From: Botryllus schlosseri
Taxonomy: Eukaryota
Assembly: GCA_051294905.1 (NCBI GenBank)
Contig: CM119374.1
Location: forward strand, 22,196,001-22,260,000
Direction of reading: 5' to 3'
DNA: 64,000 nucleotides
In this document: piece after piece, positions 27,587 to 64,000 of the stretch
Layout of the letters: the number at the start of each line of letters is the position of its first letter
Position numbering within the stretch: the first letter of the stretch is position 1
Notes under the pieces: generated by a model
Databases searched by the model: none
The model's input: only the letters and a program-made list of their open reading frames with translations
What the model was told of the DNA's origin: nothing
Made by a program: the position numbers and the translations under genes

Positions 27587-30500
27587 ATGGTAATGCTTAC
27601 AAATGCGTTGCTTTTGATCAGTATCTGTGTTACGCTGGGTGCGGTAATCACAAGCAGCACGGATGCAAAACTGCTCCATAATACGACCGCCCTTCGCGAT
27701 GTGGCAACTATGCCCGGAAATATGTCGTCGTCAGTGTTTATGACGCCACAGAGGGATAAGTTCAGTAGATTGTTCTGCTACAAAAGCAGTGAACCAGAGC
27801 CTGAATACAGAAATAGATGCTGCGCATCTGAGGTGTACCGATTTCGTTTATCTTGGCAACATGGCGGTTATTTCCTCACGACGTTGCTCGAAAGGTTGCA
27901 GCGATGGAACTGTGATGAATTTCGACAGGAATGCAACACACCGTCATACAATTTCACCGCGTTTAATAGTGTTGTGTATGAACGGTTTTGCTTTCCCGAT
28001 TCAATGCACCGTCAATGCAAAGGCAAGGTTTTGACACTAGCTCAGAATCATCGGTTTCCGAATACCACTGGCGAATGGACCGATGTGATTGAACATATTA
28101 ATCCCGAATATTTATCCGGAGATGAATTGAAAGATCCTTGTATTTCGGTCGCACTCTTTGATCGATCATCGGGAGGCGTTGGAAGATTTCAGGAAATTGT
28201 GGAAGTTTATCTGCCATTTTGTGGACTTCAATGGAATGGATATGACACCACTGTATCGATGAGAAGTGGAGTTTCGGTCTGGACTGGTCTATCGTTCGGG
28301 TACGGTTTTAGACAAAAGTATAATATAGATAATATATTACTGCAATCTTCCATATTTATGACCTTCTTAAACTTTTAAAGGCGCACCCTACGTTAGTAAC
28401 AGATTTCGCCCCAACCCCTTATGGTCACTATAAAAAAAATCATCGCAAATGGCAGCTATAGGGTGTGTGCAATAAAAGTGTATAATTTCATGAGGAATCA
28501 AGGGTGTGCAGCGCAGTGTGCATTGTGCAGTAGGGGAATTCGTAAAAGAATCCCAGCACATAAATTATGGCTCAATTCTAACGAGTATAGCCGCGGTTCA
28601 ACATGACATTGTAATTTCGACCTTTTTTCAAAATAATAGTATTTACGGTGACCAATTTTGTCATTTCTCATGGCCAAACATCGTGTTCCAGGCATCCTGG
28701 AATGGTTACTGATGTATACTGTACAGCACATACATAACATACATGGATAGCTGGTTCGTGGTACAGAACTTGAGTATAGCTTTCAATACAACATCCATTG
28801 TAAAAGAATATTTATTGAACCCGAATACTTTTCGGGTGCCTCATTTCAAGAGTTAGCGGCACACTGAAGGGATTTAAACAGATCTGACTGCAAAAACCAA
28901 AAAGGCAAAGTATGACGCAACAATCAAAATCACAGACCACGAAATTCGCATTGTACCAATGGCAACAATAAGAAACTAGAAGTATACGAACATACGGTAC
29001 TATGGTTGCCAGTAAATTCGGCCACCGGTAAATTCGGCCATCGGTCACTTCGGCCCTCGGTAAATTCGGCCAGGGCCGGGGTAACAATAACATTACCTAA
29101 CCCTAATCCTAACCCTAATCCTATATAACCCCTAACCTCCAAATCACTTGATAATAATATAATTATGTAATTAATTCGCATTAATAGTTGGTAATACATT
29201 TTTACACAAAATTCTCCGAGGGCCGAATTTACCGATTAAATTGGTCCTCGGTAAATTCGGCCCCGTAAATATCCGCGTTATCTGCGGTGACTGCGTGATA
29301 TACGCACACCCTGTCCTCCAAATCACTTGATAATGATATTATTATGTCATTAATTCACATTAATAGTTGGTAATACGTTTTTATACAAAATTCTCCGAGG
29401 GCCGAATTTACCAAGTAAATTCGGCCATCGGTAAATTCGGCCCCGTGAATATCCGCGCGATCTCCCGCGATTACGCGATCTACGCATACCCTGACCTCCA
29501 AATCACTTGATAATAGTATAATTATGTGATCAATTCATGTTAACGGTTGGTAATACATCTTAATACAATATTCTCGGAAGGCCGAATTTACCGAGGGCCG
29601 AAGTTACCTACGGCCGAATTTACCGGTGGCCGAATTTACTGGCAACCCGGTACTATAGTAGCGACGCAATTTGTAAATAAACAGTTACACTCACGAAAGA
29701 ACACGCACTAATGAGAAATTTGTAGGTTATAGAGGAAATCTTTTTGTCTGCATAAAATAGGTTTGTTCAACTGAATAAAAGTAGACTCCAACACTTTTAA
29801 ATGAAACAAAGATCTGCCACGCGCAATGACAGTGAACATATTGTCATTATAGTGATGTGCACAGTAGGGTGGAGTGAAAATGACTTTTTTTTTCAAATCA
29901 AAAAAGGCCTTCCTCAATCCTGACAAATGACCTAAAACTTCAATGAAAAGTGACTTCAGGGTGTTGCCCCCATTTTCCAGCCGGCAACCCCCCAATTTCT
30001 GCGTGTGGGGGTGTAAAATGGCCATCTCGGCAACCGCTGCTCGTAGAGTCATGATATATAGCTCAAAATCTGCGGAAGCATCATGTTTCTATCTGTCTTC
30101 TGAAGAAAGTTTTCTCTATTGTGAACACAAAATGAGTTATAGCCAAAAAACTATATATACGCACATTTTTGTTGAAATTCAGCATTTATTCTGACGAATT
30201 GTGATCTGTCATTAGTTTTTTTTTTAAAGTAAAGTAACACACTGGCAATACCGAATATTGGGCCCATATTACAAATATATTCACAACACAGTCCTTTTAA
30301 AATCGGTTCAAAACATCATAATGAAACATTCACATTGAACGTCTTATATTAAAAATGCATTCTTTTGTCAAGTTTTTTCATCAGTTTACGAGACTTAATT
30401 TTTCGGCGAATGAGGCCATCTCGTCTTTGAAATCCCGAAACGTGCCCTGATGCTTCTGTTACGAGCTTTACATGATGTTCCATGCACTGTTTGATTGCGG

Positions 30501-33500
30501 CATGGATGAAACAAAACCAGAGGCTTCTCGCGGCATTCTTCTAACTCTGCATCAGTTAAGTGCTCAATCGCCGGAGAAAGTTGTTGATATAAGGTTCAAT
30601 ATCAACCAACTCGTGGTATACCTTTGCTTCCAAGTTCAACTTTGAGACGCAGAATAAACGAACAGGACCGCAGTTCAATTGGTTGGAACCGCTATGACTC
30701 TCAATGTCCAGGAGTGAATTTTATTCAGCGGCATGTTTTCGAATCGCCAGCACCTTGGTCACACCCAATTGAAAAAAACTACGTGGAAGTGTATCTTGTT
30801 GGCCAGTTACTCAATTCAAAAAGCTCTCGCCACCACTTATGGCCTTTCAAAAGCTCCCATAGGAAATTGTTAGTGACTTAAGTAAGGACCAGTTATATGC
30901 TTATAAATGTGCTGGGCAATTATTCAAGGAAATGCTGATGATGATCTGGCTTACTTGGAGGTTGGACCACCGGTTGCGCATTCAAGATGGCAAACTTTAG
31001 GATGCAGTGCAGAGTTTTACGGTATTATGTAACAGTTAATGAACCGCATTTAAACCTGGAGATTCTGGTTCGTTTTTGCCTTGAAGTATATTTTCCAACT
31101 TGGTTTGAGATCAAGGGAAACAAACATATAACACATGGACCCAGAAACATCTTCAACTTGATTAAACAGGTTTTGAATTTCTCTGACCGAAACGTTCGAA
31201 AAATTGCTCCGAATGTGGTGATAAGAAACGGTTATTCCGCACACCCCGAAAATATTATGATTGCAATGCTGGTAGATGATAATGAAGACATACGAAATAA
31301 GGGTGTGACCAAGGTGCTTGCGTTTCGAAAACATGCCGCTGAATAAAATTCACTTGTGGACATTGAAAGTCATAGCAGTTCCAACCAATTGAACTGGGGT
31401 CCTATTCGTTTATTCTGTGTCCAAAAACCAAGGCATACCACGAATTGGTTGATATTGAACCTTATCAACAACTTCCTCCAACGATTGAGCACTTAACTGA
31501 TGCAGAGTTAGAAGAATGCCGCGAGAAGCCTCTGATTTTGTTTCATCCATGCAACAATCAAACAGTGGAACGACATGTAAAGCTCGTAACAGAAGCATCA
31601 GCACTAGTTTCGGGATTTCAAAGACGAGATGGCCTCATTCGCCGAAAAATTGAGTCTCGTAAACTGATGAAAAAACTTGACAAAAGAATGCATTTTTAAT
31701 AAAAGTCGTTAAATGTGAGTGTTTCATTATGATGTTTTGAACCGATTTTAAAAGAACTGTGTTGTGAATATATTTGTAATATGGGCCCAATATTCGGTAT
31801 TGCCACTGTGTTACTTTACTTTAAAAAAAACTAATGACAGATCACAATTCGTCAGAATAAATGCTGAATTTCAACAAAAATGTGCGTATATATAGTTTTT
31901 TGGCTATAACTCATTTTGTGTTCACAATAGAGAAAACTTTCTTCAGAAGACAGATAGAAACATGATGCTTCCGCAAATTTTGAGCTATATATCATGACTC
32001 TACGAGCAGCGGTTGCCGAGATGGGCCATTTTACCCCCCCCACACGCAGAAATTGGGGGGTTGCCGGCTGGAAAATGGGGGCAACACCCTGAAGTCACTT
32101 TTAATTGAAGTTTTAGGTCATTTGTCAGGATTGAGGAAGGCCTTTTTTGATTTGAAAAAAAAAGTCATTTTCACTCCACCCTAGTGCACAGGCGAGGTTT
32201 TCACTCAGATGCTGACCAATTGACGAAGCATATGCTTGGTAATCGTCATAGCAGTCTGTTTTGGCAGCCAATTTGCACTGACGTGCGAGCTCCGTGCGAT
32301 CACTTGCGCAAGTTTTTGACCGAATCAATTTGGGGATATGCTGCTTAATACGCTCAAACAATCTTTGAGGTGTACGTCCTACATACCTACTATCACAGTG
32401 GCACTTGTATTGGTAGACAACATTACTTGCATTAAAAGTAGGAAGTACATCTTTTCGAGAGTTCATGTTCATGAATATCTAAATTTGAATCTTTTTTCAA
32501 CAACAATCATATCACCGATTTTCATATTTATTGTTCACAAATACAGCGCGAAAAGAGAGGTTTTAGTGAACACCTAGAAGTTTCAGTACAGCTCCAACAC
32601 ATTCAGCTTTCAAGTACGCAACATTACCCTCTGAAGGCTTTGCGCCTCCGTTTATGCACCATTGACCGGTATGGTTATTGATGCTGTTCTAAATTAGGTG
32701 TCATATCTTTTACATGGTCTGGAAATCAGTCTTCATTTTCGATATAGAGGATGTTCGCGGAACAAAAGATCGGAGAACATAGGCTTATCCAATTTAAGGA
32801 ATCCATACTAATTTCAATACATATTTCCACTTCATTGAGTCATTCAGCATAAATTCTTGCCAGAAGCAATTTATGTGGATTATAATTACCGCTATCGTTA
32901 GACAGTTTGTAACGGTCTTGGTGGTACTTCCTCGTAACGTATCAATCATGAGCTTTAGTCCACAATCGATTTCAGCTGTGAATGCTTTACAAATATGCGT
33001 ATAACGTAAGTTTTCGACTCCACCATGAATTGCACTCAATGCGCCGTTACGCATATGTCGCATACGCGTGTCTTCACGTTAAATTTGACAACAATCTTTC
33101 TTTCGATGCGTATTAACTCATCAACAAATGGCATGCTTTTGGCAGGCAATCGGTGTCGGTTACTTTCGCAATGCAGGATGCATCTCCGCGACTAACGCAA
33201 AAGAATTAGGTAAACTAAAACTAAGGTACAATCTCAGAAAATATATTCAGCAGTTACTGTGATGGCTATTTCTTATAACAATTGCACACAAAATAGTGAT
33301 GCCGAAACTATATACGTTCACTTTTCAAATTCCAAAGCGCAAAAAGTAAGTAGATTCACCCAGTACATTGTTCAAGTAGAGGTTAAGGCAGTCTAAAACA
33401 TACCCAATTGAGTAAGCAGGCAAATCCTACTTGAGTAGTTTGATAATGAGCATCTCTGCCTTGAAACGTGATTTATGTTGAAAACTGAAACCAGAAATGC

Positions 33501-35375
33501 TAGTTTTAACCTGATGCGCACTGCCTGTGGAACTGATGTCGGGAATTACCGTGTTTGTCACTAGTCGTGAGTCACAATACCATGCACAATTGCACATACC
33601 AATCGCGGCTATCACGACAAGCTTCTCTGATTGCATGCCGTAACGACTTAATACGCTTCACGGGCAGGTGAAATTGGATTATGAATTCGTTTCGTTTGGA
33701 AACTTGAACTCGAATAATTATTCTTATGTACGATTAGCAAATAAGATGATCGTATAGTTGTCCTCGGGTATGGGCTATCGCTATATTACGTGGACATCTT
33801 GGATGTTCCCTGACGACACGACCCGGTATAGACATTATAGGCTGGTCGCCAATACCGGGCTACATGATCTAGTCGTGCAGATTATATACATTGGTGGATC
33901 ATTATCAATTATGTTTTGTCAAATGGATCGATAGGTTTCACATTGTACGGTAGTGTAGTAGTATATTGTGCCTACATGGCCCTACCAAGTTGTCTTGGCG
34001 AGTTATATGTCGGTATCACAAAACATATCATCCCAGCATCACAACATAATCGTGATACGGACCAGCCCATTAGAAAGGCAAGACGAATTGTCCACCCCCG
34101 GCATAAGTGGCGAACGGATTGTCACATCGCGAGAGCTATTCTATGTGTCAATTTCTTTTATTGTACAGCCACTTTGTGTTAGTGTGTCCTATCAGTAGAA
34201 AAAGGTTGACAACCACTAGATTTGACATTTTCCATTTTTTTTAACTCTTCAGATGCAGGGGAGCTCTCATTTTCTTCATGGTGCTAATGGGGTTGCTCGG
34301 AATCGCAACAGTTGTCGCTAACGGAACGATACTCGCCGTGTTCGCATCGAACAAAAAGCTGCGAAACAGTCAAGCCATATTTCAAATGTCCTTAGCTGTC
34401 GCGGACCTCATCGTTGGACTATTGGTGTGGCCTAATATGATTGTAATGCAGTGTCTGTTGTTTTTATACCCACGGAATATGGGAGACGTTGTAACAGAGG
34501 AAAGACTGACGGTAAAAGGTATTCGAACGTATTTTCCGAACTTCGGTACAGACAAACTGGAGAGAAGATATCCAGCTCTTAACTCGGCCCAATTTAATCA
34601 CGATTACAGGATGTTTTTAGGGTTTATTATGCTTCTGTCTATTCTGGTATCCATCATGACACTTATGGCTGCTAGTTTTGACCGCCTCTACGCTATTTCT
34701 TTCCCACTCCGACACCGAAGGAAAAACCCTAAAACAACAGCCATTAAGGTCTGTGTCGCAGTATGGTTACTATGTATTTTCTTCTGCATACTCCCTATCG
34801 TTATCCCGGCATTGGAATACAACACAATATCATCTATATTCGCATCGGCGGATGGTACTTATGGCACAACACTGGCATTGGTAGCTCTTATCGTTCCGAT
34901 GGTGATGACATGGGTGGTTTCGGGAGCAACTTACGAAACATCGCGACGCCACGGTCTGCGCACGAAGAGCATGTTTGCAACGGCAAAGACTAATTCCTCT
35001 AAAAACGAAAGAAGACTAGCTAAAACCTTATGTCTCATGGTTGGAGTGTTCACGATCAGTGTTCTACCGGCCATCATATGCGTGGTCTGCGGAGCTTTTT
35101 TCATCAGGACTGAGTGGGCGAACCCTGCTTCTATCGATCTTGCTGCAATGAATGCGTATTCGTCAGTTGAGTATATTGCGGTTATAGTACTGACTATGAA
35201 TAGTTTGTGGAATTGCCTGATCTACAGCCTGAGAAATATGGGGTTCCGAAAAGCAGCCAGGAACATTTTCTCCCGAGAAGACTCTCGTAGAAACAGTTCC
35301 CACGGCACAACGAGGCTTCACACCACCAGCACTACTGTTACTTCTAAGCGGGTTACGCAGAGTATACCTAAATGA
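27587..35375 (+). CDS. Class A-like GPCR with N-terminal 10-Cys ectodomain, paralog A (2 coding exons, 611 aa by my model)
   Basis: Exon 1, 27587-28299: signal peptide MVMLTNALLLISICVTLGAVITS, stalk, Cys-rich domain. Phase-2 intron 28300-34252 (GG|gtacgg ... ttcag|A). Exon 2, 34253-35375: seven hydrophobic segments with N1.50 (VANG), LAVAD, SFDRL, SVLP and NSLWNCLIY. The same junction is found in paralogs B and C. Confidence 0.85.
29004..29647. mobile_element. Foldback-type non-autonomous DNA transposon with 9-bp TSD (Mutator/Merlin-like), in GPCR-A intron
   Basis: ~70-bp TIRs starting GGTTGCCAGTAAATTCGGCC; exact 9-bp TSD CGGTACTAT (28995-29003, 29648-29656); three internal ~180-bp tandem units starting at 29136, 29315 and 29495; (CCTAAC/CCTAAT)n at 29096-29123. 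The superfamily is inferred only from TSD length and the GG terminus. Confidence 0.8.
29708..32472 (-). mobile_element. 5'-truncated Penelope-like retroelement fragment (GIY-YIG endonuclease end), split by the 29865-32183 insertion
   Basis: 32472-32184 reads NVVYQYKCHCDSRYVGRTPQRLFERIKQH...SSIGQHLSENLA. It resumes across the TSD at 29864-29708 as CAHHYNDNMFTVIARGRSLFHLKVLESTFIQLNKPILCRQKDFLYNL*, the typical Penelope GIY-YIG C-terminus. Confidence 0.85.
29865..32183 (+). mobile_element. Foldback hAT (hATm-like) derivative: ~900-bp inverted arms both containing the transposase 3' end, plus a 534-bp transposase spacer
   Basis: Termini TAGGGTGGAGTGAAAATGAC / GTCATTTTCACTCCACCCTA; exact TSD GTGCACAG (29857-29864, 32184-32191). 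Arms 29865-30766 and 31301-32183 are reverse complements. Frameshifted transposase pieces include DLSKDQLYAYK, GPPVAHSRW, EVYFPTWFEIK, RNGYSAHPENIMIAML and HPCNNQTVERHVKLVTEAS. The hATm label is from recalled family features. Confidence 0.88.
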
Positions 35376-35925
35376 AAACTTCTGCTGCTATGTCCGTCTC
35401 CCATAGTGTTGAGCCCGAGCATGTACTGTAGAAGCCCATTGCCCGCATATCCAGATAGATAGCCACTAAGTCGACGTATGTGGTTGTCCGGTTGAGTGGG
35501 TTTATGCATTGTTAACTGCTCAATTGCTTTTTGTATGCAATCTCTTCATTTATCGACCGCGTGTATTGTTAAATTATCCGGACAGTTTTTTTCATAAACG
35601 TCTTTAACTTGTGTCATGTGCATAGCATAAGTACCATTCGCATTTGTGATCACTGTAGGTATGTGGATGATAACTCCAAGACATATTTCCCTAGATATAC
35701 TGTTATAAGTGATAATACAAAGTCTAATGATTGCAATTGTCCGCCTATCTTACACCAGCGTCGTGTAGTTCCGTAACAGTGGACTTGATTGGGAAAGCTC
35801 GCACCAATACAGCTATTTTGTTATTGTTATAACAGATTACATCTACCAAGCCAGGATATTCAGTGTGGTTGTGTGGGTGTCTGGAATTAAATTTCACGAA
35901 ATATTACTGGGCTCTTTCAAAGTGG

Positions 35926-36329
35926 CAGAGATGAGCGGATTTGAAATTTCCTTGTCCTAATCCAATCCAAATCCGAACCTTCAAATCCTAATCCAAAACT
36001 TTTCCATATTCAAGTCCATGTCCAATCCTAATCCGATTCGAACTGGAAATTCAGAAAAAATACTAATTTATGCAATGGAGGGATTCGAAAATTTTCTTTC
36101 ACAACCAACGATTCACTTGATTCAAGATAACGTAGTAACCATAAGTACAATAATAACTGATCTGAATAAAGTTTGTCGCCATTCGCCACACGACATTTCT
36201 ATCTCCCAGGAAATAGGTAAATCCAATCCAAATCCTAATCCGTTCTGAAAAAAATGTCTAATCCAAATCCGACAAAATTTCACAAATCCTGTTTTTTCAA
36301 AACCTAATCCTAATCCATGCTCATCTCTG
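35926..36329. mobile_element. hAT-type MITE (AATCC-array family)
   Basis: TIRs CAGAGATGAGC / GCTCATCTCTG; TSD CAAAGTGG / GAAAGTGG (7/8); arrays of AATCC motifs. Confidence 0.85.
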
Positions 36330-36696
36330 GAAAGTGGATGTATTTTTAGCGAATCCAACCAAACTACTCTAAGGCGCCGTCTTGCGTGGGTTCGTAAAAT
36401 CATTTCGTCCCGTTCACCTCCAGACGCATTGTCAAAAGCGAACACCTCGCCGATTACTACACATCAGCACATCCACTGTAATGTAGCGCCGTGGTGTTTC
36501 CAGTCGAAGTTATCTCTGCCCGTCGAGTTGAATATTCATCTCAACATGACACCGCCGCGGTTTTTAGATCTCATCTAACAAGGCTATTACAACGGTTGTC
36601 CCGTTACTATGCGCTACAATCTCAGTAGGTCACGATAACCATTCACGCCATCGAGTATCACTTGCTTATTCAACCGGAACCCCACACAATAACGCT

Positions 36697-36710
36697 GTTG
36701 ACATAGCGAC
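36697..36710 (-). promoter_or_regulatory. Candidate RFX X-box upstream of the CFAP97D2-like gene
   Basis: Minus strand GTCGCTATGTCAAC matches the X-box consensus GTYNYYATRRNAAC at 13/14 positions. It lies just upstream of a putative non-coding exon donor (ACAG|GTACT ~36770) and ~520 bp from the ATG. A second looser motif, GTTACTATGCGCTAC, is at ~36603. Confidence 0.4.
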
Positions 36711-37230
36711 CCGTTCTATTGTTAATCATCCGTGAGATCCGTCAGCGATACGGTCCGGGATAATAAGACAGGTACTTGACAGCAACAGACGTATATTGGT
36801 AGTTTTTCAGGGATACCCATGTAATTGGATTGGTTAAAACAGCGCATATATCTGCAGCAGTTTTTTATTTACTTCACCCCAAGAGCTAAGCTCTAGTCGG
36901 ATATTGATTGAGAGTTGCCCTATGTTACACAGTCAGCGTAATTGACTAGGAGAGTTCAATAGTAATGAATTAGCAATATTTTCACGTTGCTGCTGTCCAT
37001 AAGTTTTATCTGACTGATTCACGCTCTCGACTATCTAATCGCCCGCATAATACGTTAGTTAAGAACTCAAATGGTGGTTATTCAACGTCACTGGAGGTAT
37101 CCCCGTCTACATAATGGTAACTTAATACTAATTAGACGCATAATGAATCTCGAACCGCCTAATTAAGATGACGATCCCGGATTGACTTTCAGTTATTCCC
37201 CTATATACCTTCTATGTAAGATATATCAAC

Positions 37231-47408
<10,178 letters not shown>

Positions 47409-48409: not shown

Positions 48410-48657
48410 CAACGGATTTTGAGTTGACTAAAAACAAGGTCGTCACTTACGACCGACTCCCGAATTACCCGCTCGAACGTCCGTATTTGCTATTTAGCGT
48501 CTTTTATGCCCATTTTCAGTCGAATCTGTCCGTTATCCTAGCTGTAGAGGAGGCCGAATTGACAAAAATGAAGACAATTAGGCGTCCTCGGAGGACATTT
48601 TCAAAAACCTGAAAAAGGAGGACAAATCCTCGTAAAGGAGGGCGTATGGTAACTCTA
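48410..48657. mobile_element. Right-end fragment of the GAGGAC-array element
   Basis: Similar to ~20630-20844; ends GTATGGTAACTCTA. Confidence 0.55.
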
Positions 48658-48778
48658 GCTAATGGTATATGTATTATAGGCAACACAACGAGCATGTGTC
48701 AACCGATACAACCACGATAAGGTGTTCTTTAAATAAAAAATCCAAGGTAGCACAAAGCTTCAAAACCCGATCGATTAC

Positions 48779-50024
48779 CAGTGTTAGGATCAAGTCACTA
48801 CCTTCGAGTCATCTCGAGTCATTGCACATTTTGACTCGAGTCAAGTCAAGTCAATCAATTTTCGAAGGTGACTCGAGTCAAGTCAAGTCACTCGATTTTC
48901 GGAGGTGACTCGAGTCAAGTCGAGTCAAGTCAAGTCAAGTCACGAGTCAAGTCACAATTCAAGTCAAATTGAATCATCGACGTCTGGGTGATGATTCAAA
49001 TTCATAACATTTTGCCAGCTGCGTGAAAAAGATTAATTGGCCATTTAGCTTGAATCAAATAACGAATATAAACGTAAATATACAAGCAAATAGGTGATGT
49101 ATCGCACGCGCACACGTAGAACTGCTAATAAAATACGTGATTAACTAGTTACATGCTACAGTCGGGGAAGCGAGTGGCGCAGTTGGTTAAACACTGCAGT
49201 CACGACACCAATGGGTGATGGTTCGAGTCTCGGCTCTGCCATGTTTCTATGTGTCGGAGGTTTATCTGGGCTCCTCATCGCCGATCCCGCTGTAAATACA
49301 GCGCCTTCAAAAGCCCAGAGGAAGAGAGAGCCGAACTCTTGAAAGATGGCAGCTAAAGATCACGATGAAAGAGCTAAAAGCAAAAGAGACATCTGACGTT
49401 AATGAATTCATGTACTGGGCGCAAATGACTATAATAGCGATAAGCGCCAATGATGTGTCAATAAAACAAACAAACATGTAACAAACAAACTGTAATTATC
49501 AGCCAAAATAGAGGATCGAATACGAAGCTTCGAGAAGTTTAAACAAATTGATATACACTACCCATCTACACATATCCGTGAGAATATAAACGCATAAACT
49601 ATATTCCTTCGATTTAAATCCTAGAGAGGGTTGGTAAAGGTGAGCACTGCTCAATGTAAGCGCTGAGTCGACTAAGAAACAGAGATACGTTTCTATTAAT
49701 CTACTACTACTACGACAACGTAAGCCGTGATGATTTCGTTTGCGGCCAATTTATTTGTGATGTAACAATGGAGGGCCAGTGAAATGTACAATAAAAGGAT
49801 GACTGGTTGCTCTCACATGTGTCAGCGCCGTATCGCGAATAATCCGAACGTATACACATGATACAATGATTTAGTCGACACAGTTTGCTTATTGATGACT
49901 TGAAATTGACTCGTAAATTTTGCTCCGAGTCACGAGTCAATCCACATTTTTGAAGCGTCGAGTCAAGTCAAGTCAAGTCATTTTTGCAAAGTGACTCGAG
50001 TCAAGTCGAGTCATCCCAACACTG
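48779..50024. mobile_element. hAT-type MITE (GACTC/GAGTC-array family) carrying a nested SINE
   Basis: TIRs CAGTGTTAGGAT / ATCCCAACACTG; exact TSD TCGATTAC (48771-48778, 50025-50032); homologous to 1-378. Confidence 0.92.
49164..49337 (+). mobile_element. tRNA-derived SINE, family 1, nested in the 48779-50024 MITE
   Basis: Near-identical to ~17400-17570 (A box TGGCGCAGTTGG, B box GGTTCGAGTCT); shorter at the 3' end. Confidence 0.78.
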
Positions 50025-50559
50025 TCGATTACCATAGTGTTTTCGATCCCTTCACATCGCCACAGGTCGTTCATTCCACGACACGTCAGTAAAATACGAA
50101 ATCACTCAGAATCTCGCAACCACGCAACCACCTCATGTTGTCACTCCTTATATATGTTCACCACGACATTAACTCAACCTTGACGTGACGCGCGAAACTA
50201 TGCAAACTAATTTGTTCATGATTGCGATCATGTCTTATCGGGTGAAATTTGGAGCTCTTCATCGGCTATAGCCATTTCGCGCAAAATCAATTCAAATTTG
50301 CTATAGTAAATTACAGATGCCACAACTCCCTCTATGCCAGTAAACATGATCGATGGTCATCTATATCACGTGCATGTGCAATGTGCATCCAGTGTGCAAG
50401 ACGAGGGCTGAAGGAACACATCGATTGGAGTAGGGAACTATTGATAAGAGGTATAATATCTACGAGAATTATGGTTTCAATGTTCTTGAAACATCGATTG
50501 GTCGTATCACAGCTTCAAATACGTGTACTACGAAGACACGCACGTTAGTGGAAATGATC

Positions 50560-50760
50560 AACCCACAGCATTGTCACAGTGTGCAACGAAATAGGTATGG
50601 TCGAAATGAATACCAAATTAACTTTGTGTGTTGTTGAACTGGCATTTATTATTTATTCATGGTCGCATAAAAGGTACGCATTTGAACTTTTCGAATTGGA
50701 TGACGTCATAATGAGTGATACTGTAATACTCGACGCCACTCGAAGCCTACTTTTTTCCGA
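50560..50760. repeat. Degenerate internal fragment of the TCGAGT-array MITE family
   Basis: GGTATGGTCGAAA...ATACCAAA...GGTCGCAT...TTTGAACTT...TGACGTCATAATGAGTGATACT resembles 23390-23560 and 38200-38370; no TIR or TSD. Confidence 0.5.
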
Positions 50761-53700
50761 ATGGAATCAAATGCTCTTACCAATAAGCTGCTTGTTCGAT
50801 GTTATTTCTAAATTATTTTATTTCCGATAATCCGACATCCTTCATATACGATACGGCTACGCAAAAGCGCTACGATCATTGCGATTCCTGAAACAGGTCA
50901 AATCATGTGAGCTTGCAGTCTGTCGACCATCAGGAGCCTTAGATTTCCGCGATTTATTTGTCATCGGCAGAAAGATATAAATAGGACACAGAGAAAAAAA
51001 TCCGTATATCTTCGTACAAGTCATACTAAAGCAGTAAAGGCCATGGTAAAATGTAGCGGGTAATCAGAGTTAACAATATCGCTCCCGACGCTTCCGGAGC
51101 ACGGCCTCACAAGCGGTACTGTTTTTGTAGAGTTGTAACTCTTCGTAGAATCTGTTTGGCTTCTTGGCTTAATAGTTTTTAACCTTGCCGGAAACTTTTG
51201 CAGCAGACTTGCGCGGCACGGGCGACTTTGGCTTTGTGGAGACGGCCTTGATTTGGACCTTGAACATCAAGCTAAAATACAAGAAATTAGAGTTACTCAG
51301 TGTAGATAAGATACAGTTTGATGCGTTGATGAAGATATAGTTCCGGCTGATTAGTGCATTTAAAAGCTTACAATCTAATGACATGTGTTACTACGACAGT
51401 ATATTAACATGGGTGCAGTCAATAAATAAACACGTACAAATTTCAGAATCGGTACATCAACCTGATCAAGGCGTAACATCATGACTGATATAACATATAT
51501 ATTGTGCCAGTATTTGTATTATACAAGGTGATCAATCTGATCATTAATATTTCACATTAGCATGAGCAGACCATCCATCCATCCATCGAGACTGATATGC
51601 CACTGTCGAACCAGAAATGCTTCATCAGTTATCTAATCTTTTTATTAGCCGGGTCAAATCGCGTCACAAAAGTGGTTTCGCAATTACTTCGAACCATTTG
51701 TGGTGCATATCTGGTTCCAATTTGGAGCTGATTAAGTGGGATAATTCCTTGCTAAGGAGAATGGAACCCTCTTGGATCCGTGGACCCACGATTAAGAAAC
51801 TCTGCTTTGAATATATGCAGAGTCAATCTGTCAAACTAATTATACCCAAATTGAATCCAGATAGGTCATATAAATCTCAGCATTTGAATTAGAAAACACT
51901 GACGTCGATAACCGTAAATATAAATAGAATCTAGTATTGATGCTTCAGCAAATATTTATCGAAGGATTATTTAGATGACTTGAAAATTCAGTTGAAAATT
52001 TGACTCCAAGTCAGGAACTATTTGATATTTCTCACACATCGAGTCTGACTCAAGTCTAATTATGTTATGGTATTGATTCGAGTAAAGCCAAATCATTCGC
52101 AAAATATGACTCGAATCCTCCCAGGATTCATTTCAACCTGGAACTTTGCGGTATAACAATTGGAGATATTCCATAGTTTTAAGCAGGCTTATTTAAAAGA
52201 CACTCAGTACGACAAGATCATGAACGTAAAGGTCAAGGTCAAATATGCAGCACCGCATTCTATGCCATGAATCTGCATGGAATGCCTGTTACTGGCGCAT
52301 GTGGGATTTCAGTATTCACTGAGCCAGTTTCGACTTGAATTTGTCAGGAAATAAATACGCTGACTGAGCCACTCGACATGACATATGAATTGTTACTCAC
52401 AATTCGCAAATGTATTTGTGCTTTACTTTTCGTCCTTGCTCCGAACACGTTTCTGGCTTCCAATGCGAACCTTTGTAGTTTTTGCTGATTGCAACTCTTT
52501 CAATGGCCGTTGGTACGTCTCCGGGATGCAAAATTCTGAAATTTTGATTCCTATTGTTAAACTAACTAAACTTATCCGCAACTATAGTCCGGAATATTGT
52601 CGGAAATACTTCACATTCAATTGCGTTGCATAACCTGGCTATAGAGTTGGAACGTATGCAAATCTAACATGAATGAAAAGGCCATACAATACAACTGTGT
52701 TTCAGACCAGTTGCGGGGACATCAAGGTTTATCAATCTGGAACTTGAATGTGAAACATTCATAATAATATTCCTAAGTAAATTCGAACCTTCCACTCAAA
52801 TTACTGTAACACGAGGTTCCCTTCTGATAATAATTATCACCATCAGAGTAATATTCAGTTGATCCACACTACCAATCGTGATCAGTGGCTACTAACAGTT
52901 ATATCATCCTTGTCGACATGAGCGCACCGGAAGTAATTAAAGAGCATCAAATCCGTCTTGTCATATATGATGTGACGAACAGACTAAAATCATCTCGAAT
53001 TATCCATTGATAGTATGATACGTCGATCGATCGTAATCAATAATTTCGCGGTTCTCACGAACAAGCGTTCACAGAACAGGTGAATTCAGTAAGACTGTTT
53101 CGACTTCTAGATCGACAGAATAGAGAGTGTGCCGGAGCACCCAAATTGTGATGATAATTAGGCGCACACGTTCCTGAGCAGCGACGTATTCCCTCATATT
53201 TTAGGATCAATGGGCGAGCAGAGTGTGGTGCAACTCAGAACACATTTTTGCAGTTTGCACTAAGCAGTTCTATCTCTATTTGAAGTGAGATGTAAGCTGT
53301 GCTCGGTTATATTGAGTAAGGCTTAATGTTAATTCAAATAATATCATGGTTTATTTTTTCTCAATTCAGAACGTCTTGTTGATGATATAACATTGTTTCT
53401 ATAACAAATTCACTTTACAATGATATTGGTTCGATAGCCTGTGCAGTGTGCAGGGTGCACAATGCACATTCGAGCTATTCGTAGTTTCCATCAAGATTTG
53501 CAGGTACGTCAATTACAACTTACAAGTATTGCCAACTGAAAAATGTAAAGCTTACTCAATGCATTGTAATATGGCGAAAATAAATCAAACATTTCCAATA
53601 TCAATAAAGAAAACAAGAGATTTTTCCTGAGCGCAGATATACTGTAGCTAGTCGCTCTGCCGAAGGTATACTGCAATAGCTTTACCATTGCTTCATCATT

Positions 53701-55291
53701 GTCGAATATTTTACAAATAGGCCTACACTCCAAGACGATATCTACGAAATTACCGAGATCATTCTCGTGCGGATGCATTACAAATTGGATGAAATGAACA
53801 AAGCGACAATGATTTATATAATCACGTATACGGTGCGATATCCGGATTTGTGAACATTCGGAATTATAGCAAATTGCACCCTCCGATTTAAATCCGGCGT
53901 GACATGGTGAGCATATGGCTTTCGTGAAAATTACAGCCGGAACCTGTAGTTATATATCTTTGCAATTGCACCGTGTTGAGAGAACATGGCGATAATAAGG
54001 AGCCCGGATCAAGGCGGCTTTTACCTCCAATAGATCACAGTCACAGATATAGATATATTCTTTGGGAGTCAGACTTCTTGTGTATGTACTATTTGCGCAT
54101 TTTACCATGTAGCTAGTAATATTTTATAGGTAACAGTATTCAGCGAACTGATTCAGTATTAACACTTACGTTAGGTCGAGAGTTTTCTTCACAGAAGTTT
54201 TTAAGTCTCTAGTGATTTCGTAGCTCGCAGCAGATCCATCCTCCCAAGTCCATTTTGCTCGACCTTCCTCAGTGCGATTGTACGACAGGCCTGTGATTAG
54301 TATAAAGAGTAGTGGGTATAAAACCTAGATTAATCTAATATAATCATCATCATAACTGAATACTTAACGGAATAGGCATTCCTGATAAGATCATTGGCCG
54401 TTATTATGAGATGAAATCCTGCATTTGGTTGCACGTAAAAAACTTATTATGCATATAGACATCGTCATCATGTTTTTATTTATATGCCGTTAATTAGAGT
54501 TAAAACTAGTCAGTTAATCAGAGCAGTCCACAATAAGCAGCAATTTTTTTGAATTTATACTAGATGCGTGAATGGTCATATGCATAGCCAGCCCGGGTTA
54601 GCATTTCGGGAGCTAAACTTTTATAATATAACGTGACCGCACGGATATCCATTATGACGTAGATAAACAAATGAGGGGCTCACTGTTCAACTCGAAACGT
54701 TGAGGGAGCATTGGCACCGTCCCTCTTGACTACACCACTGGAGTGATGACTCAGTGTTAACATAAAGTTTTTGGCCAGTTCATTCGAAGACGCCAGAATT
54801 ACAATCACTTACCTTTCAGCATGACCGAAATATTATTCACGCACACAGGATGTAATTATTAGCTGGTATATGGGTAATCAGCCGAGCTTATTAGCCTTAC
54901 CTATCCAGTAAAACGAATTATCTGTAGGGTCGATTTCCTTGATGTAATCGGCCAATGCGGTCAACTTATCGTGATCTTTGGCTACTGCAAGTCGGGCGTT
55001 ACCATCGGCGGAACACCTGGTAAATAATATTCCACATTAAAGGCCAGAGCAGTTTTGAGAAAGTGCGGCATCGCACCCACGAACGTTTGAATGCAGATAT
55101 ATATTGAGCGGCAAATAATATCGCATGGCAGCTGTACTGTATGCATCATATCAACCATTATTCTCTAAGATGCGAAATGTATATTAGGCATTTTATATTT
55201 ATGAGTCACCAATGACCTATTCAACAATTTTGTTTCAGCAACTTATATACCTGATTAAATTTATGTCTAACTACATAAGCAAAATGAAAAC

Positions 55292-57591
55292 ATGAATGCA
55301 TTATGCAGTTATTCATTCGTTATCACCATCGTGGCAATTTGCGTTGGTCGAGACTCCTCGGAAGGTACCATAGAATATAATATAAATACTACATCTGCAT
55401 TGTACAACGTCTCGCGTTACGCCAACGCGATCTATAATAAAGAAGCTCCCAACGACACGTCGTCACATATAACGGTGAACTTGGAAAAGACACCCGATCC
55501 ATCACATAATACGAAACGTCTCAATCCGTTACGTTGTCGCACTGGGCCGGTACCAGAAGAACCTTACATCCGACCGTGTTGCGATTACTATTATGATTTG
55601 TTTTCAAGTAGATGGACGGATGGAAATTATTACCTCACGACCTTTCTGGAGAGGCTGCAACGTTGGAATTGCACGCAACTGCACACAGAATGCGAAAGGC
55701 AGACATTCTCGTTTACGAAGTTTACAGAGTTGGTATATCAAAGATTCTGCAATCCAAATGAACTAATAACCAGTTGTATATCATATATTCGCGATGCCAT
55801 CACAAGGTATCAGTTTCTGGATTCTGAATATTCAAAACAATCCAATTGGACTTTACTGGTGGAGTCCTTAAATTCCGATATGATAAGCTGGCCTGATTTA
55901 CTGTCGCCGTGCGTTCAAATCGCTTTGTTTGATCGACAAGATGGTGGAGTCGGGCGTTACCTTGAGATCGCAGAGCCGTTTGTTCCGTACTGTGGTTTAC
56001 AGTGGAACGGATTTGACTACAGGACTGCGACGGAGAAAAATGTATCACCGTGGATGGCGATGAATGTGGGGTTAGTATTAGAAATCCTGCTAATGAAAAC
56101 CAAGCGTTACATATCATTTGCACAGAATTGAATGAAGATTGTCGTCTATTTATCTATATACAAAATTTTTATCCAACCCGTGAGTGAACAACCTATTTTT
56201 TCCAATTAAAATAATTGTTTATCTGGGATGCCTGGTGCTATTTAATTGTTTTGTCCAATCCCACCCCAACTTTCAATTGCTAAGAAAACCACTTCTGTAT
56301 TATCTTTAGATGCAAAGCCGGAATCGGGATCGGAATGCTCGTTATGGGATTAGGATCACTTTTTACAATCATCTGCAATAGTATAATTCTTTACGTTTTT
56401 GGGACTGCCAGGACCCTTAAAAACAGTCAGGCGACTTACAAAATATCATTAGCGGTGGCTGACCTTACGATAGGTATCGTAGTGTGGCCTAACATGATCG
56501 TCATGCAGTATTTAACTTTCTTCATTCCAAGATCTATGGGGAGTGTGATTCTAAGACCATATATATACGAAGGTTCAAACTATCCATTCGATAAGCCCAA
56601 TGTCACTTATCGATACAGCGGGGGGTCGTTTACCGATATCTTCCCTTCAGATTATTCACAAGCCATGGGATTTTTCTCAAATCTTGGCATCGTAGTGTCT
56701 GTCTACACACTCATGCTTGCAAGTATTGATCGATTACTAGCGATAGCATTTCCCATGAAGTATAGTAGACACAGGGCGGAGAAAATTGCTAAAATAGTAT
56801 GCGTCATGTTGTGGCTGTTGTCGTGCGTTTTCTCAGCGGTGCCGATATTTGCCGATATGAATCTCCGCTATACAGTTTTGTCGTCAATACTAATTGGTGC
56901 GACAGGGGAAGCAGCTTTAATACTACTTCTAATCGGCCTTGTGGTCCCCCTTATCATCACTCTGATTCTTAGCGTGTTAACATTTCTCTCGTCGCGAAAA
57001 CACGCGCGAAATCGGCGGGATATTATTGCGTCACAGCAACGCAATCATGCGTACGAGAGAGATCTCGAACGAAGACTGGCGAGAACTCTAATTCTAATGG
57101 TCGGTGCCTATACTTTTTCTGTGTTGGCACCGGTATGCTGTTCGGTCGCCGGGTTACTTTCCACGACCACGACTTGGTCTGACCCGAAGAATCTGAACTT
57201 GGCAGCCGCAAACGCGTACACTACCAGCGAATACCTTTCTGTTATCATCCTGTCGACTAACAGCATATGGAACTTTTTCATTTACAACTGGCGGAACAAA
57301 GCCTTCCGTGACTCTGTGACGTTACTGCGCAAGAGGATCAACAGCAAGCCTGGATTTAGACATGCACTTATTGCTATCAGGCGGCTAATATCAATGGCTA
57401 GAAGCGCAAAAAGCTACACGACCGTACAAATTAGAAGATACAGCGTCCCATTTCTATCCACGTCAATGTCTAACAACGTTGCAACTGTCTCTAGTGAAGT
57501 GTACGTCGCGACATTTCAACAGCGATCAAGCATGGGATCTGTTAACGTATTAGACAAGGAATGTCCAGTACAAAATCCGCAACCAGAATAG
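55292..57591 (+). CDS. Class A-like GPCR with N-terminal 10-Cys ectodomain, paralog B (2 coding exons, 686 aa by my model)
   Basis: Exon 1 55292-56070; 239-bp phase-2 intron (GG|gttagt ... tttag|A); exon 2 56310-57591 with ICNS, LAVAD, SIDRL and NSIWNFFIY. Ectodomain aligns with paralogs A and C. Confidence 0.9.
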
Positions 57592-58815
57592 TGTTTGTAC
57601 CCGGCGTCCAGCAGAAAATGATGATAGTAAATTATAAATTTGCCATCGTGTTGGAAAATCACGCGTTGATTACTGGATTCCCTCATTGAATATTTTTTCT
57701 TTGCTCAAGTATCGCTCAAGTCTCCTTTGATAGTCCTAGAGTAGACACACTACTAGTATTAACGCGACAACTTAAAAAGATTTCAAAACATGTGCTGCAG
57801 TAAATTAACGTCATTCGATGAACACTGAACAATATGTTTATAGCGAAGGCTTTGGATCACCAATCTTACGAAATCGGTGGTAGAGGTTTCTGGAATCATT
57901 ATTTAGCATCGTAGTTCGCGGTAGTTTAACATTGGATTTTACTCTCTCATGTTTGAACGTGCTAAAATTCAAATTTCGGACGCACATGCGAATTTCTTGA
58001 TACCTGTTTTGGATCTGCAACAATACATTTTTGTTGTTGTTGGAATTCCAATTCACTACTAGTTGCTGATGATTACCCCTGACGAGTGTTAGCCGAAAAT
58101 ATTCGGGCTCATTTCAATATGAAGATACTAATCAATTGTATGTTGGAATTCCGTGTCCAAATTTGCATCGCACTTCAAGCGCAACGGGTTTCCGGGACTC
58201 AAAATACTATATCCGCCAATCTTCTCCGCACAAAGCGCTTTTGTTACCCCATACTTTGAACATCCACTGTTCGTTGTGTATAGAGATAGTTTTCGTCTCA
58301 GTCGCGGTGTTGAAAAAAAGGTTTTGTTCTCGTATGTATGTGCAATGTGCATTGTGCGCTTGTGCAGTTTCCCTCATATATGCTTGTCACGAGGAGCATC
58401 GATAAGATGTGTTACGCAGTTCATACTCTCGTGTTTGTGTGAAATGAATATGCCTTGTTCTAAAATGATAGACACATTTCAATTTTTCAATCTGTTCAAT
58501 AGACACAATACACCATGGGACGATAAAAAACATAATCAGCGTGGACTTGATATTTGTATTTACGAAACAGGCCGTCGTAGTGCGTCGGGTTTAACCAGGT
58601 CAGAGGTCATACATATACGTGAAGCCTCGTCGTTTCGTAGGCTATATCTCGGCCTTCCGTACGCAACGTGAAACTATTGTTGCCACCAGAAACTATCGTT
58701 GCCACCAGATGGCAATCACGATATGAATACGTAGGACCTGTTTATTTCTACGAATTCTTTTGGATTATGGGCCCGAATTTACCGAGATGAAAGGGATTAC
58801 AATGCCGGATCGCCA

Positions 58816-58819
<4 letters not shown>

Positions 58820-58885
<66 letters not shown>
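58820..58885. repeat. (CA)33 microsatellite
   Basis: Perfect CA dinucleotide run. Confidence 0.97.
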
Positions 58886-58890
<5 letters not shown>

Positions 58891-59154
58891 ATACCACACA
58901 CCACACAGTGTATACTTAAACAGTCATACAACAAACATTACTACTCGGTCATCATGCATCAATAAACAAATTTGAACAGTTAGTTTTGAGAAATAACCGT
59001 GGTTGACCCACTAACCGTCAACAATCTCTGATCTCTGGCTACCAGTTGATTGGTAAGATATGCTTACAACGTACAAGACCCTAACAACCATTACTGAAAA
59101 TAAATCAATCTGCACGCATTGCACGGTGCAGCCTTTAAAGAGAGAGAGAGAGAG

Positions 59155-59393
59155 GGGGGTCAGATTTATTTTCGCCTGCACCATCGAGATGCTTTGACGA
59201 TGGAGATGCGATACGACCCTTAAGTAAGGTCATCTAGTCTACACCGCCAATTTCTCTCCTCCACGCTATCCATGAATGCTGAGCGCCTAGCAAGATAGCC
59301 GCGGATACTAGTTTTCGAGTCTTTGGGCTGACCCGGCCGGGATTGAACCCACGACCTCCCGATCAAGAAGCCGGATGCATCACCATTACACTA
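59155..59393 (-). mobile_element. tRNA-derived SINE, family 2
   Basis: Minus strand: A-box-like TAGTGTAATGGT, B-box GGTTCAATCCC, core CCAAAGAC...CTTGCTAGGCGCTCAGCATT, then a (CT)n tail (59139-59154 as AG on +); homologous to 19291-19526. Confidence 0.75.
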
Positions 59394-61529: not shown

Positions 61530-64000
61530 ATGGATTTAAAGCAAAATAACGTCATCCAGTGGATTGTCATATCTATGATTGCACTTGCAACGAGTCAAAC
61601 TACAGATCATCGCACTAACGAGCGACGTAATCCACCAACTACTGTCTCGGAACAGAATACAACAGAATCCGGGACGGATGCGGCTACCATTTTGCCAAAT
61701 TTTCCCATTTCGTCAAATGTTACCGAAACAGCTTTTACACATATTGAGTCTGTGAACAGTGATTCCACATATACCAACGCCACTGCAATCGACATTACGA
61801 CTTTGTATTACAACGCATCCAGCACAATTAGTCGTTTCGACCGCGCGGTGTGCAGGGACTATCCAATCCCTGTCGCTGAGTTCAAAGACGAATGTTGCGC
61901 GTACCAGTACCGGATATACACGCAACGTTGGATGGCCGGGTCCTACTACCTTGTCACTATACTGGAGCGGATGAAAAGATGGGGCTGTAGGGAGTTCAAG
62001 GATGAATGCGGTGCAAATCCAACTTGGCCTTTCACAGAATACTCAAGACGAATGTACGATCTGTTTTGTCGCCGTGATCATCTCGAGAGTGCTTGTTATG
62101 AAGAAGTCGAAGACACTGCAAAGAGCTACAACTTCATCCAGGAACCAACCAACGGGAGCTGGAAACACCTCATCGAGACACTGGATTCGAGTCACATGCA
62201 TTTCCGCGATCTCACAAAGTCGTGCATACAAGTTGCGCTGTTCGATCGCTTGGATGGCGGGCCTGGTAGATTCCATGAAGTTGTAGAGCCGTTCGCCCCG
62301 TTCTGCGGACTCCAGTGGCAGGGCTACGATTACAACACGGCGCAATATCGCGATGTCTCTCCGTGGACAGGCATGAGTATATGGTACGTAAAGTGCAGTT
62401 ATGAAGTAACCAAGGATTATACTCGGAGATTTGAGAATTGTCCGTGAGATCCTCAAGAGCTTATATTACAAAATGAACCGAGCCGCCAGAATATACATTG
62501 TTTGGTGAATTATATCCTGTCGGACTTAGGGTTGCATTTAAAACAAACGGTGTTTTGAAACACTTTGTTCAAAACATGTTTTAAACAGTGTTTCAAACAA
62601 AGGCCCTTAAAAAATTTGAGATTTTTTAAGTTGTAAAATTATGTCATAATTGTGTAAATACTTTCCAAAAAACATGCACCGCGAGCCTACGGACAATTGC
62701 CGCCCGATATGGCCGACGTATATCGATATGGGATGGTTGGAACCCTCGAAATTGTCGGTTCAACATTAATACTACAGATATTTCGTCAAACGAGCTACAT
62801 TTACCCTAGATTTTTAATAGTCAATGTCAACCACTACGACGTCAGAATTGAAAATTCGTGATGTCATGATTTAAAAAAAAAGAAAAAAGAAATAAAAACA
62901 AGTTTTAAACAAGGGCCTTGTTTTAAACATGTCTGTTTTAAATTGATTTTTGTTTTAAATGCATCCCTAGTCGGACTCATTTCCGTTATTAGACTTTTTC
63001 ACATCTTGTAATTTTATAATCATCCCGTAAGCATATTTCGTACATGTACCCGACATAGGATATAAGCCCTATGTGCAATATGTGCAACAGGCATTACCAT
63101 ATATTTCTTCGGGGCCACGAGACAAAAAGTTATAGACTACCCAACCATTTGTGGCTTCTACACGTTATTCATAACTACTTGTCAATATCATACTAGCGCT
63201 CTGTTTTTATTAGGGTATTTATCCAGTCCCGAATGCAGGGTTGTAACAATGTCACAAGGTTCCGAGTCACAAGTCAATCTCCCTTTTATAGTTTTGACTC
63301 GAGTCAAGTCGAGTCATTTTTAATTCACCACCGAATCAAGTCATAGTCCAAGCCAGTGAGTAGAGGGTCGAGTCCGAGTCATAGGGTTGTTACCCGAGTC
63401 CGAGTCAAAGTCATTGTCTTCACTGTTAAGTTTTGAGTTCAATCCTGTCCAATCCACTTTCTTCAGCTCTGCTCGAGGTATATAGAATGACTCGCATTCA
63501 TAATTTTTAAATTTTACTCAGTCTTAACAGTTTCTGGTCCTATTTTTAATAACCAGGACTGATTGACAAAATACCAATAATGTGGTGATTTTACTATTCT
63601 TCGAAGTTACAATGAAATGTGTGTCTTGGCCGTCCTAGTCTCGAGTCATATGACTTGCTTCGATTAATGGACAACCACACGAGTACAAGTCGAGTCAATA
63701 TCCAAATTGACTCGAGTCGAGTCGAGTCATTTAACGCAGTTGAAAAATTACTCGAGTCAAATCGAGTCACCTAAAATCGTGACTCGAGTCGGACTCTAGT
63801 CATCACAGCCCTGTCCGAATGCCAACATTCGATTCGACACAATAATTTTAACACACTATCGAATTCATAATGTAATTTTCTATTTTTCTAGGTGCCGTTC
63901 AAGCATAATAATATGCGTCCTCGTGATGGCGATAGCGGGGACCGCGACAATACTTTCCAACATCCTGATTCTGGCTGTATTTGGAACATCAGAAAGATTA
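61530..64000 (+). CDS. Class A-like GPCR with N-terminal 10-Cys ectodomain, paralog C (3' truncated by window end)
   Basis: Exon 1, 61530-62383: MDLKQNNVIQWIVISMIALATS, T/S-rich stalk, Cys domain. Phase-2 intron 62384-63891 (TG|gtacgt ... ttctag|G). Exon 2 from 63892 reads (W)CRSSIIICVLVMAIAGTATILSNILILAVFGTSERL, i.e. TM1 homologous to A and B. Confidence 0.85.
62527..62969. mobile_element. hAT-type MITE (TTTAAAACA-array family) in GPCR-C intron
   Basis: TIRs TAGGGTTGCATTTAAAACA / TGTTTTAAATGCATCCCTA; exact TSD GTCGGACT (62519-62526, 62970-62977). Confidence 0.9.
63236..63813. mobile_element. hAT-type MITE (second GACTCGAGTC-array family) in GPCR-C intron
   Basis: TIRs CAGGGTTGT / ACAGCCCTG; TSD CCCGAATG / TCCGAATG (7/8); GAGTC arrays like 48779-50024 but different termini and interior. 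Confidence 0.82.

Follow-up and report, generated by a model that had tools for sequence, protein, structure and literature searches.

A tandem group of tunicate class A receptors in Botryllus schlosseri carries a disulfide-rich ectodomain of apparently new predicted fold

Class A (rhodopsin-like) G protein-coupled receptors (GPCRs) with folded ectodomains are few and belong mainly to the leucine-rich repeat (LRR) and LDLa types. Here, three tandem genes are described that encode class A seven-transmembrane (7TM) receptors with a cysteine-rich N-terminal domain and that lie in a 64,000-nucleotide stretch of the genome of the tunicate Botryllus schlosseri (assembly GCA_051294905.1, contig CM119374.1, positions 22,196,001 to 22,260,000 of the forward strand), in the following called the window, with positions counted from its first letter. 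Among the described systems, large ectodomains are also found on other class A receptors, the LGR and RXFP groups and the LDLa-repeat receptors of Ciona, which include an expansion specific to tunicates (Kamesh et al. 2008, PMC2396169). Tunicates furthermore possess receptors for LF peptides, of which five, Ci-LF-1-R, -2-R, -5/6-R, -7-R and -8-R, were deorphanised in Ciona (Shiraishi et al. 2019, PMC6475428). The Ci-LF receptors are reported to form a clade restricted to urochordates, comprising the Ciona models KH.C4.122, KH.C2.1037, KH.C2.1132, KH.C2.878 and KH.C2.212 as well as members from Botryllus and Oikopleura, with cannabinoid, adenosine and adrenergic receptors as the closest BLAST matches in vertebrates (PMC6475428). 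Two further systems lie outside class A. The class F receptors Frizzled (Fz) and Smoothened carry a mostly helical extracellular domain with five disulfides, connected to the 7TM part by a short, disulfide-stabilised linker; in Smoothened this cysteine-rich domain (CRD) stacks on the helix bundle and takes part in ligand sensing. In class B1 (secretin-type) receptors a disulfide-locked N-terminal domain captures the peptide and presents it to the bundle.

The three genes, termed G1, G2 and G3, are intact tandem two-exon paralogs on the + strand. In the interpretation favoured here, to which we assign a probability of roughly 0.55, they belong to a tunicate-restricted class A family in which the ectodomain, together with a long first extracellular loop (ECL1), acts as a rigid cap that captures the agonist or gates its entry, with peptides as probable ligands. 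The likeness to class F lies in the helical, disulfide-rich domain and the short linker; in contrast to class F, the 7TM part is of class A, the Cys spacing differs, and a CC doublet and a β-hairpin are present. No Pfam match to the Fz CRD (PF01392) was obtained in 57 family members at E≤1, and no Fz structure was among the Foldseek and VIA-align matches listed. The proposed logic resembles that of class B1, which however uses a three-disulfide hormone-receptor domain, while the linker here is far shorter and the 7TM part is of class A; for the ectodomain neither a Pfam nor a fold match to HRM or GAIN/GPS was found. Unlike the LGR/RXFP receptors and the LDLa-repeat receptors of Ciona, whose ectodomains are built from LRR and/or LDL-A repeats, the three ectodomains and the 57 members show no Pfam match to such repeats N-terminal to the 7TM part. 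An assignment to the Fz-CRD, LGR, class B or adhesion type of ectodomain was rejected, as no profile or fold match was found. The 2008 paper on the Ciona receptor repertoire does not describe the ectodomain (PMC2396169), and no description of it was found in the literature searched.

The joining of exon 1 to the 7TM exon was observed for G2, whose exons are spliced exactly as predicted. Public runs of Botryllus schlosseri were compared with window positions 55100-57800 and one joint was seen: six raw RNA-seq reads with five distinct starts (run X16) pass from 56070 to 56310, skipping 239 bases with GT..AG ends, and a 594-nt contig of run X5 spans the same joint, with over 250 bases to either side of it. 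The joins of G1 and G3 are predicted from an intron phase and position identical to those of G2 and from the Cys count; for G1 there is in addition the spliced product, which aligns at 46% identity over 534 residues, unbroken across the junction, with RefSeq models from Styela clava, among them XP_039251399. All three introns lie at the homologous position in phase 2 and split a Gly (G1, G2) or a Trp codon (G3). The products spliced in silico comprise 611 (G1) and 686 residues (G2) and have no internal stops. A first-pass annotation, made from the sequence alone, had located the three genes, had placed the tenth ectodomain Cys (Cys10) at the first whole codon of exon 2, directly before transmembrane helix 1 (TM1), and had named splicing of exon 1 to the 7TM exon as a point to be checked. 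Open reading frames (ORFs) and junction sequences agree with all three locations, Cys10 occupies this codon in G1, G2 and G3, and the reads and the contig supply the splice for G2. Further copies, remnants or pseudogenes of the family were not found in the window by tblastn.

The ectodomain cores of about 185 residues are 38-40% identical between the three paralogs, with 50 of 183 columns invariant in a nearly gap-free alignment, while the stalks, which carry two to four N-x-S/T sequons each, are unalignable. The first-pass annotation had made the same distinction, and its near-invariant motifs are present in the alignments of the three ectodomains. The Cys spacing is C-x13-CC-x29-C-x6-C-x18/19-C-x8-C-x40/44/42-C-x26-C-x26-C, in which the x42 of G3 is the sole correction to the spacing given earlier (x40/44). 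The description as a domain with ten Cys is true for the three window genes, whereas the commonest count in the family is 12; G1-G3 and their Styela relatives lack the two Cys of the consensus 'WCG' and 'TCM'. Of the 55 sequences compared, 18 have neither of these two Cys, and the joint loss took place on three or more separate branches; the two therefore probably form one disulfide, and G1-G3 belong to a branch that lost this pair. Cys1 and the first Cys of the CC doublet are jointly absent in six sequences, a co-loss that suggests a second pair. After subtraction of both pairs, seven Cys in exon 1 and the pre-TM1 Cys remain. The latter, Cys10, is kept in 96% of the family sequences, and the family alignment contains no conserved Cys in any extracellular loop. 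Because the number of Cys in the exon-1 domain is odd (nine in G1-G3, 11 in most relatives) and the extracellular loops offer no conserved partner, we infer that the pre-TM1 Cys pairs into the ectodomain; the predicted disulfide would staple the domain to the start of TM1.

An AlphaFold2 model of the G2 core, based on a 57-sequence alignment, reached a mean predicted local distance difference test score (pLDDT) of 94.3 and a predicted template-modelling score (pTM) of 0.90. It consists of about ten helices, followed by a β-hairpin (residues 149-154 and 163-168) and two short helices. Comparison of the ectodomain model with the PDB by Foldseek gave a best E value of 2.8 and template-modelling scores (TM scores) of at most 0.25. 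Every match retrieved from the AlphaFold DB clusters or from Swiss-Prot was a family member; the AlphaFold DB relatives are A0A6F9DI97 and F6UX23 (TM scores 0.85-0.86) and a reduced version, E4YX06 (0.45), which from their accession series we take to be from Phallusia, Ciona and Oikopleura, respectively. No relative was found in the ESM Atlas, searched by features and by shape (TM score at most 0.34), and a PDB profile search with the ectodomain returned a single chance-level match. The three ectodomains have no Pfam match, and among the 57 members, at E≤1, no Pfam family recurs in more than two. The makers of VIA-align warn that helical folds are often under-scored, and the lack of a detected relative does not by itself prove a new fold. 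As modelled, the ectodomain has a fold without a detectable relative in the databases searched and is apparently new. The AlphaFold and Foldseek comparison suggested in the first-pass annotation has thereby yielded a confident model and no match to any named family.

The receptor part is of class A, with a bundle shape like that of adenosine and aminergic receptors. Pfam PF00001 (7tm_1) matches G1 with 86.1 bits (E 3.6e-24) and G2 with 77.4 bits (E 1.6e-21) at a cut-off of 30.5. Sequence matches of the 7TM part in the PDB are weak and mixed (TAAR13, GPER, β-2 adrenergic and 5-HT2A receptors; E 7e-9 to 1e-5), and by Foldseek the bundle is nearest to adenosine A2A and β-adrenergic structures, with TM scores by target of 0.80-0.84 to A2A. 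The full-length AlphaFold2 model of a Styela homolog (P0006, 598 residues) has a pLDDT of 80 and a pTM of 0.78, with 84 residues disordered; even with both domains confidently positioned against each other, a pTM much higher than this would not be attainable. The linker between ectodomain and TM1 measures about ten residues. In the P0006 model TM1 starts at residue 224 and the pre-TM1 Cys is residue 226, and seven long helices are followed by a helix-8-like segment. ECL1 comprises about 38 residues (297-334) with a hairpin and is unusually long for class A; across the family this loop, encoded at 34253-35375 in G1 and 56310-57591 in G2, has about 38-50 residues and a predicted β-hairpin. The family consensus keeps N1.50, D2.50 (in LAxAD), DR, W4.50, P5.50, P6.50 and N...Y in TM7. 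Non-canonical are DRL for DRY, SLLP for CWxP (without W6.48) and NxFIY, which lacks the Pro of NPxxY. A conserved disulfide between TM3 and the second extracellular loop (ECL2) was not found: beyond the Cys of the ectodomain and the pre-TM1 Cys there is no column with at least 90% Cys, and the putative ECL2 stretches of G1 and G2 contain none. Some other class A groups also lack this disulfide.

For the distribution of the domain, a profile was built from the three cores and searched against 1.84 billion cluster representatives (50% identity). It was found in 167 representatives at E≤0.001, of which 41 are at E≤1e-30, with a best E value of 1.4e-85. Among the matches listed, the domain is at the protein N-terminus throughout, and all 30 models of 535-727 residues combine it with a receptor-sized remainder. 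The short matches (100-280 residues) fit single-exon ORF fragments from assemblies, and those whose source was seen are from Logan assemblies. Of 20 clusters looked up, every named one is tunicate and two carry neither name nor taxon; the named members are from Styela clava (about 14 distinct clusters), Ciona intestinalis, Clavelina lepadiformis and Botryllus schlosseri. The profile matches relatives at E 1e-85 to 1e-10, and G1 and G2 show the arrangement that defines the family, an N-terminal domain followed by 7TM. In a maximum-likelihood tree both group with Styela clava XP_039251399, XP_039261707 and LOC120338060 (support 100/99). The family is tandemly arrayed in Ciona too: in Ciona intestinalis AP043569.1 (30676-52364) three members of 542, 761 and 403 residues lie side by side next to a RIG-I-like helicase gene. 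The Styela clava model XP_039251400 (isoform X2 of LOC120328901; P0151/P0153) begins partway through the ectodomain, past its first six Cys; this represents either an alternative start with a truncated domain or an annotation artefact.

A word-indexed protein search with exon 1 as query found only two ORF fragments, and the Ciona ectodomain region matched itself alone; a search with the full-length alignment was dominated by generic GPCR words, and none of these searches returned names tying the family to LF or YFV receptors. In public databases the members are named 'uncharacterized protein' or as cannabinoid 1A/1B, β-2 adrenergic, histamine H2, thyrotropin or S1P3-like receptors, automatic names that are misleading. 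The lineage-specific class A receptor family postulated in the first-pass annotation is supported by these results, including the profile search that it had outlined. Its further designation as undescribed applies to the ectodomain; the full-length proteins, however, already have RefSeq and UniProt entries, as GPCRs that are uncharacterised or wrongly named.

The nearest homolog of G1 exon 1 is P0003, an exon-1 ORF product that comes from a different public run; it is 84% identical to G1 exon 1, with 88% identity in the core, 71% in signal peptide and stalk and 94% in the last 78 core residues. In G2, variants taken from the reads and contigs of other individuals amount to five nonsynonymous and one synonymous in the stalk (28 codons) and to one of each in the core (186 codons); these small numbers agree in direction with a conserved core and a fast-evolving stalk. 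Across 57 sequences, helix 132-139 and the hairpin are most conserved, and the N-terminal arm and residues 81-111 least. In the RNA-seq reads of run X16, GG is replaced by CC at window positions 56473-56474 (Gly315 of G2, predicted TM2/ECL1); the contigs of other runs do not show this change, which is probably an allele.

One exon encodes the signal peptide, a glycosylated stalk that evolves fast, and a disulfide-locked, mostly helical domain of about 185 residues with one β-hairpin. Mechanistically, the predicted Cys10 disulfide would staple this domain to the upper end of the helix bundle, and domain and ECL1 together would form a rigid cap over the bundle. The cap may then take up the agonist or control its access, and relay the signal to the 7TM part, in a logic like that of the ectodomains of classes B1 and F. 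Specificity of the individual paralogs could come from the variable helix-loop stretch (core residues ~81-111), and the side turned towards the bundle is proposed to be the highly conserved C-terminal third (helix 132-139 and hairpin 149-168). By analogy with the LF-peptide receptors of Ciona, the ligands are probably short secreted peptides. Several points weigh against this scheme. Only Cys counts, pTM and sequence position speak for the Cys10 disulfide, for the geometry of the cap and for the way in which its conserved and variable faces are turned. Between paralogs, the ectodomain has diverged about as fast as the 7TM part (38-40% identity each), as would suit an integral structural module no less than a ligand-binding one; large expansions in tandem are compatible with chemosensory roles too; and the paper on the Ci-LF receptors is silent on an ectodomain, the words 'extracellular' and 'cysteine' occurring zero times each (PMC6475428). 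Of the ligand-binding, disulfide-rich domain proposed in the first-pass annotation, the folded disulfide-rich module is supported, and ligand binding is predicted.

Among the alternatives, it is conceivable, if rather doubtful, that the ectodomain is a constitutive cap, an autoregulatory lid or a tethered inverse agonist or agonist and not the primary ligand site. Agonists would then bind in the 7TM pocket as in aminergic or adenosine-like receptors, with access, folding or trafficking adjusted by the domain. The very short linker and the high pTM of the whole chain in the P0006 model are in line with such a role, as are the position of the most conserved part of the ectodomain next to TM1 and its conservation between paralogs, which is as strong as that of the 7TM part. 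Nevertheless, a module of 185 residues with five to six disulfides, kept in every full-length ascidian member and reduced in Oikopleura, would be costly for a lid, and the variable segment at core residues 81-111 is as expected of a specificity surface.

Somewhat less probable still is that these are chemosensory or environmental receptors, with the ectodomain as sensor for waterborne cues or for microbial or self/non-self molecules, and not neuropeptide receptors. Lineage-specific tandem paralogs (three in the window, three in Ciona and about 14 distinct Styela clava clusters), the long branches and poor orthology across species in the tree and the siphon-specific occurrence reported for the Ci-LF receptors (PMC6475428) would all suit this role. 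Against it, the expression known for G1-G3 amounts to a few RNA-seq reads, and what is known of function in any candidate relative is confined to peptide responses, with the relation of that candidate itself drawn by analogy. This candidate is the LF clade: compared by description only, the automatic names of the family, its A2A and β-adrenergic fold neighbours and its taxa fit the profile of the LF receptors, and a link between the two is plausible.

It is improbable that the ectodomain is a very divergent form of a known Cys-rich helical module such as the Frizzled CRD, the group of folate receptor and the N-terminal domain of NPC1, or GFR-alpha. Such an origin could be read from the ten Cys shared with the Fz CRD, the mostly helical model and the tendency of aligners to under-score helical folds; yet the 57 members have no Pfam match to any such family, the Foldseek results contain no acceptable PDB match and, in the AlphaFold DB clusters and Swiss-Prot, family members alone, and the family most often has 12 Cys, in another spacing. 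That exon 1 and the exon of the 7TM part belong to different genes, one for a secreted protein and one for a receptor beside it, with their fusion an annotation artefact, can practically be dismissed: ORF tracks list the two as separate ORFs, but the RNA refutes this for G2, intron phase and position are the same in all three genes, RefSeq models of four tunicate species join the exon-1 domain to the 7TM part, and the exon-2 Cys makes the odd Cys count of the exon-1 domain even.

The gene structures are compiled in Table 1.

Table 1. Exons and introns of the three receptor genes in the window, with splice-junction sequences (exon in capitals, / marks the boundary)
Feature	Position	Strand	Content and evidence
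G1 exon 1	27587..28299	+	Start codon, signal peptide, short stalk with predicted N-glycosylation, nine-Cys ectodomain (core 27755-28297); donor GG/gtacgg, last two bases are GG of the split Gly codon; ORF and alignments
G1 intron	28300..34252	+	5.95 kb, phase 2, GT..AG; splice predicted from homologous G2 position and continuous alignment to XP_039251399
G1 exon 2	34253..35375	+	Acceptor cag/A TGC; last base of Gly codon, Cys10, class A 7TM, C-terminal tail, stop codon; PF00001
G2 exon 1	55292..56070	+	Signal peptide, stalk with three N-x-S/T sequons, ectodomain (core 55514-56068); donor GG/gttagt, split codon Gly
G2 intron	56071..56309	+	239 bases, phase 2, GT..AG; RNA-supported
G2 exon 2	56310..57591	+	Acceptor tag/A TGC; Cys10, class A 7TM, long C-terminal tail, stop codon; PF00001
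G3 exon 1	61530..62383	+	Signal peptide, longest stalk (~80 residues, four sequons), ectodomain (core 61830-62381); donor TG/gtacgt, last two bases are TG of the split Trp codon
G3 intron	62384..63891	+	1.5 kb, phase 2, GT..AG, many CGAGTC-type repeat units; splice predicted from homologous position
G3 exon 2 (first 36 codons)	63892..64000	+	Acceptor tag/G TGC; Cys10 and TM1, 39% identity to G1 TM1 (tblastn); cut by the window end

Several repeats accompany the genes. Within the G1 intron, at 29012-29639, a 180-bp unit is repeated 2.6 times (29130-29592) and is flanked on both sides by short arrays of 16-bp units; this may be a transposon-derived or satellite-like insert. A 37-bp tandem unit of GACTCGAGTCAAGTC-like motifs is found at two distant sites (223-318 and 48832-48933), and CGAGTC-rich runs akin to the GACTCGAGTCAAGTC unit fill part of the G3 intron (~63250-63800), which together suggests a dispersed repeat element. 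A (CA)45 microsatellite is located at 58820-58907 between G2 and G3. Ten other long ORFs from 1-27500 and 35400-55200 contain no Pfam domains, and no tRNA or Rfam family was found in the window, so that by these crude tests about 47 kb of it are without identifiable genes.

For annotation, the results imply a correction, as receptor-like names such as 'cannabinoid', 'histamine H2', 'thyrotropin' and 'beta-2 adrenergic' are misleading for this family. More far-reaching, and in our view tentative and rather unlikely, is the idea that a new fold arose in the tunicate stem lineage and serves as the ligand-capturing module of a large family that includes receptors for tunicate-specific neuropeptides. 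If true, the sister group of the vertebrates would have independently evolved a class-B-like peptide recognition by ectodomain plus bundle on a class A, aminergic-like scaffold. If the LF receptors of Ciona belong to the family, ligands and assays for dissecting the domain already exist. The preferred reading of a cap-forming ectodomain offers a concrete structural hypothesis for the recognition of tunicate-specific signals that is open to testing, as the domain is compact, encoded by a single exon and confidently modelled. To the class A receptors with folded ectodomains the family would add, in the closest invertebrate relatives of the vertebrates, a domain of apparently new fold that is predicted to be rigidly mounted on the bundle.

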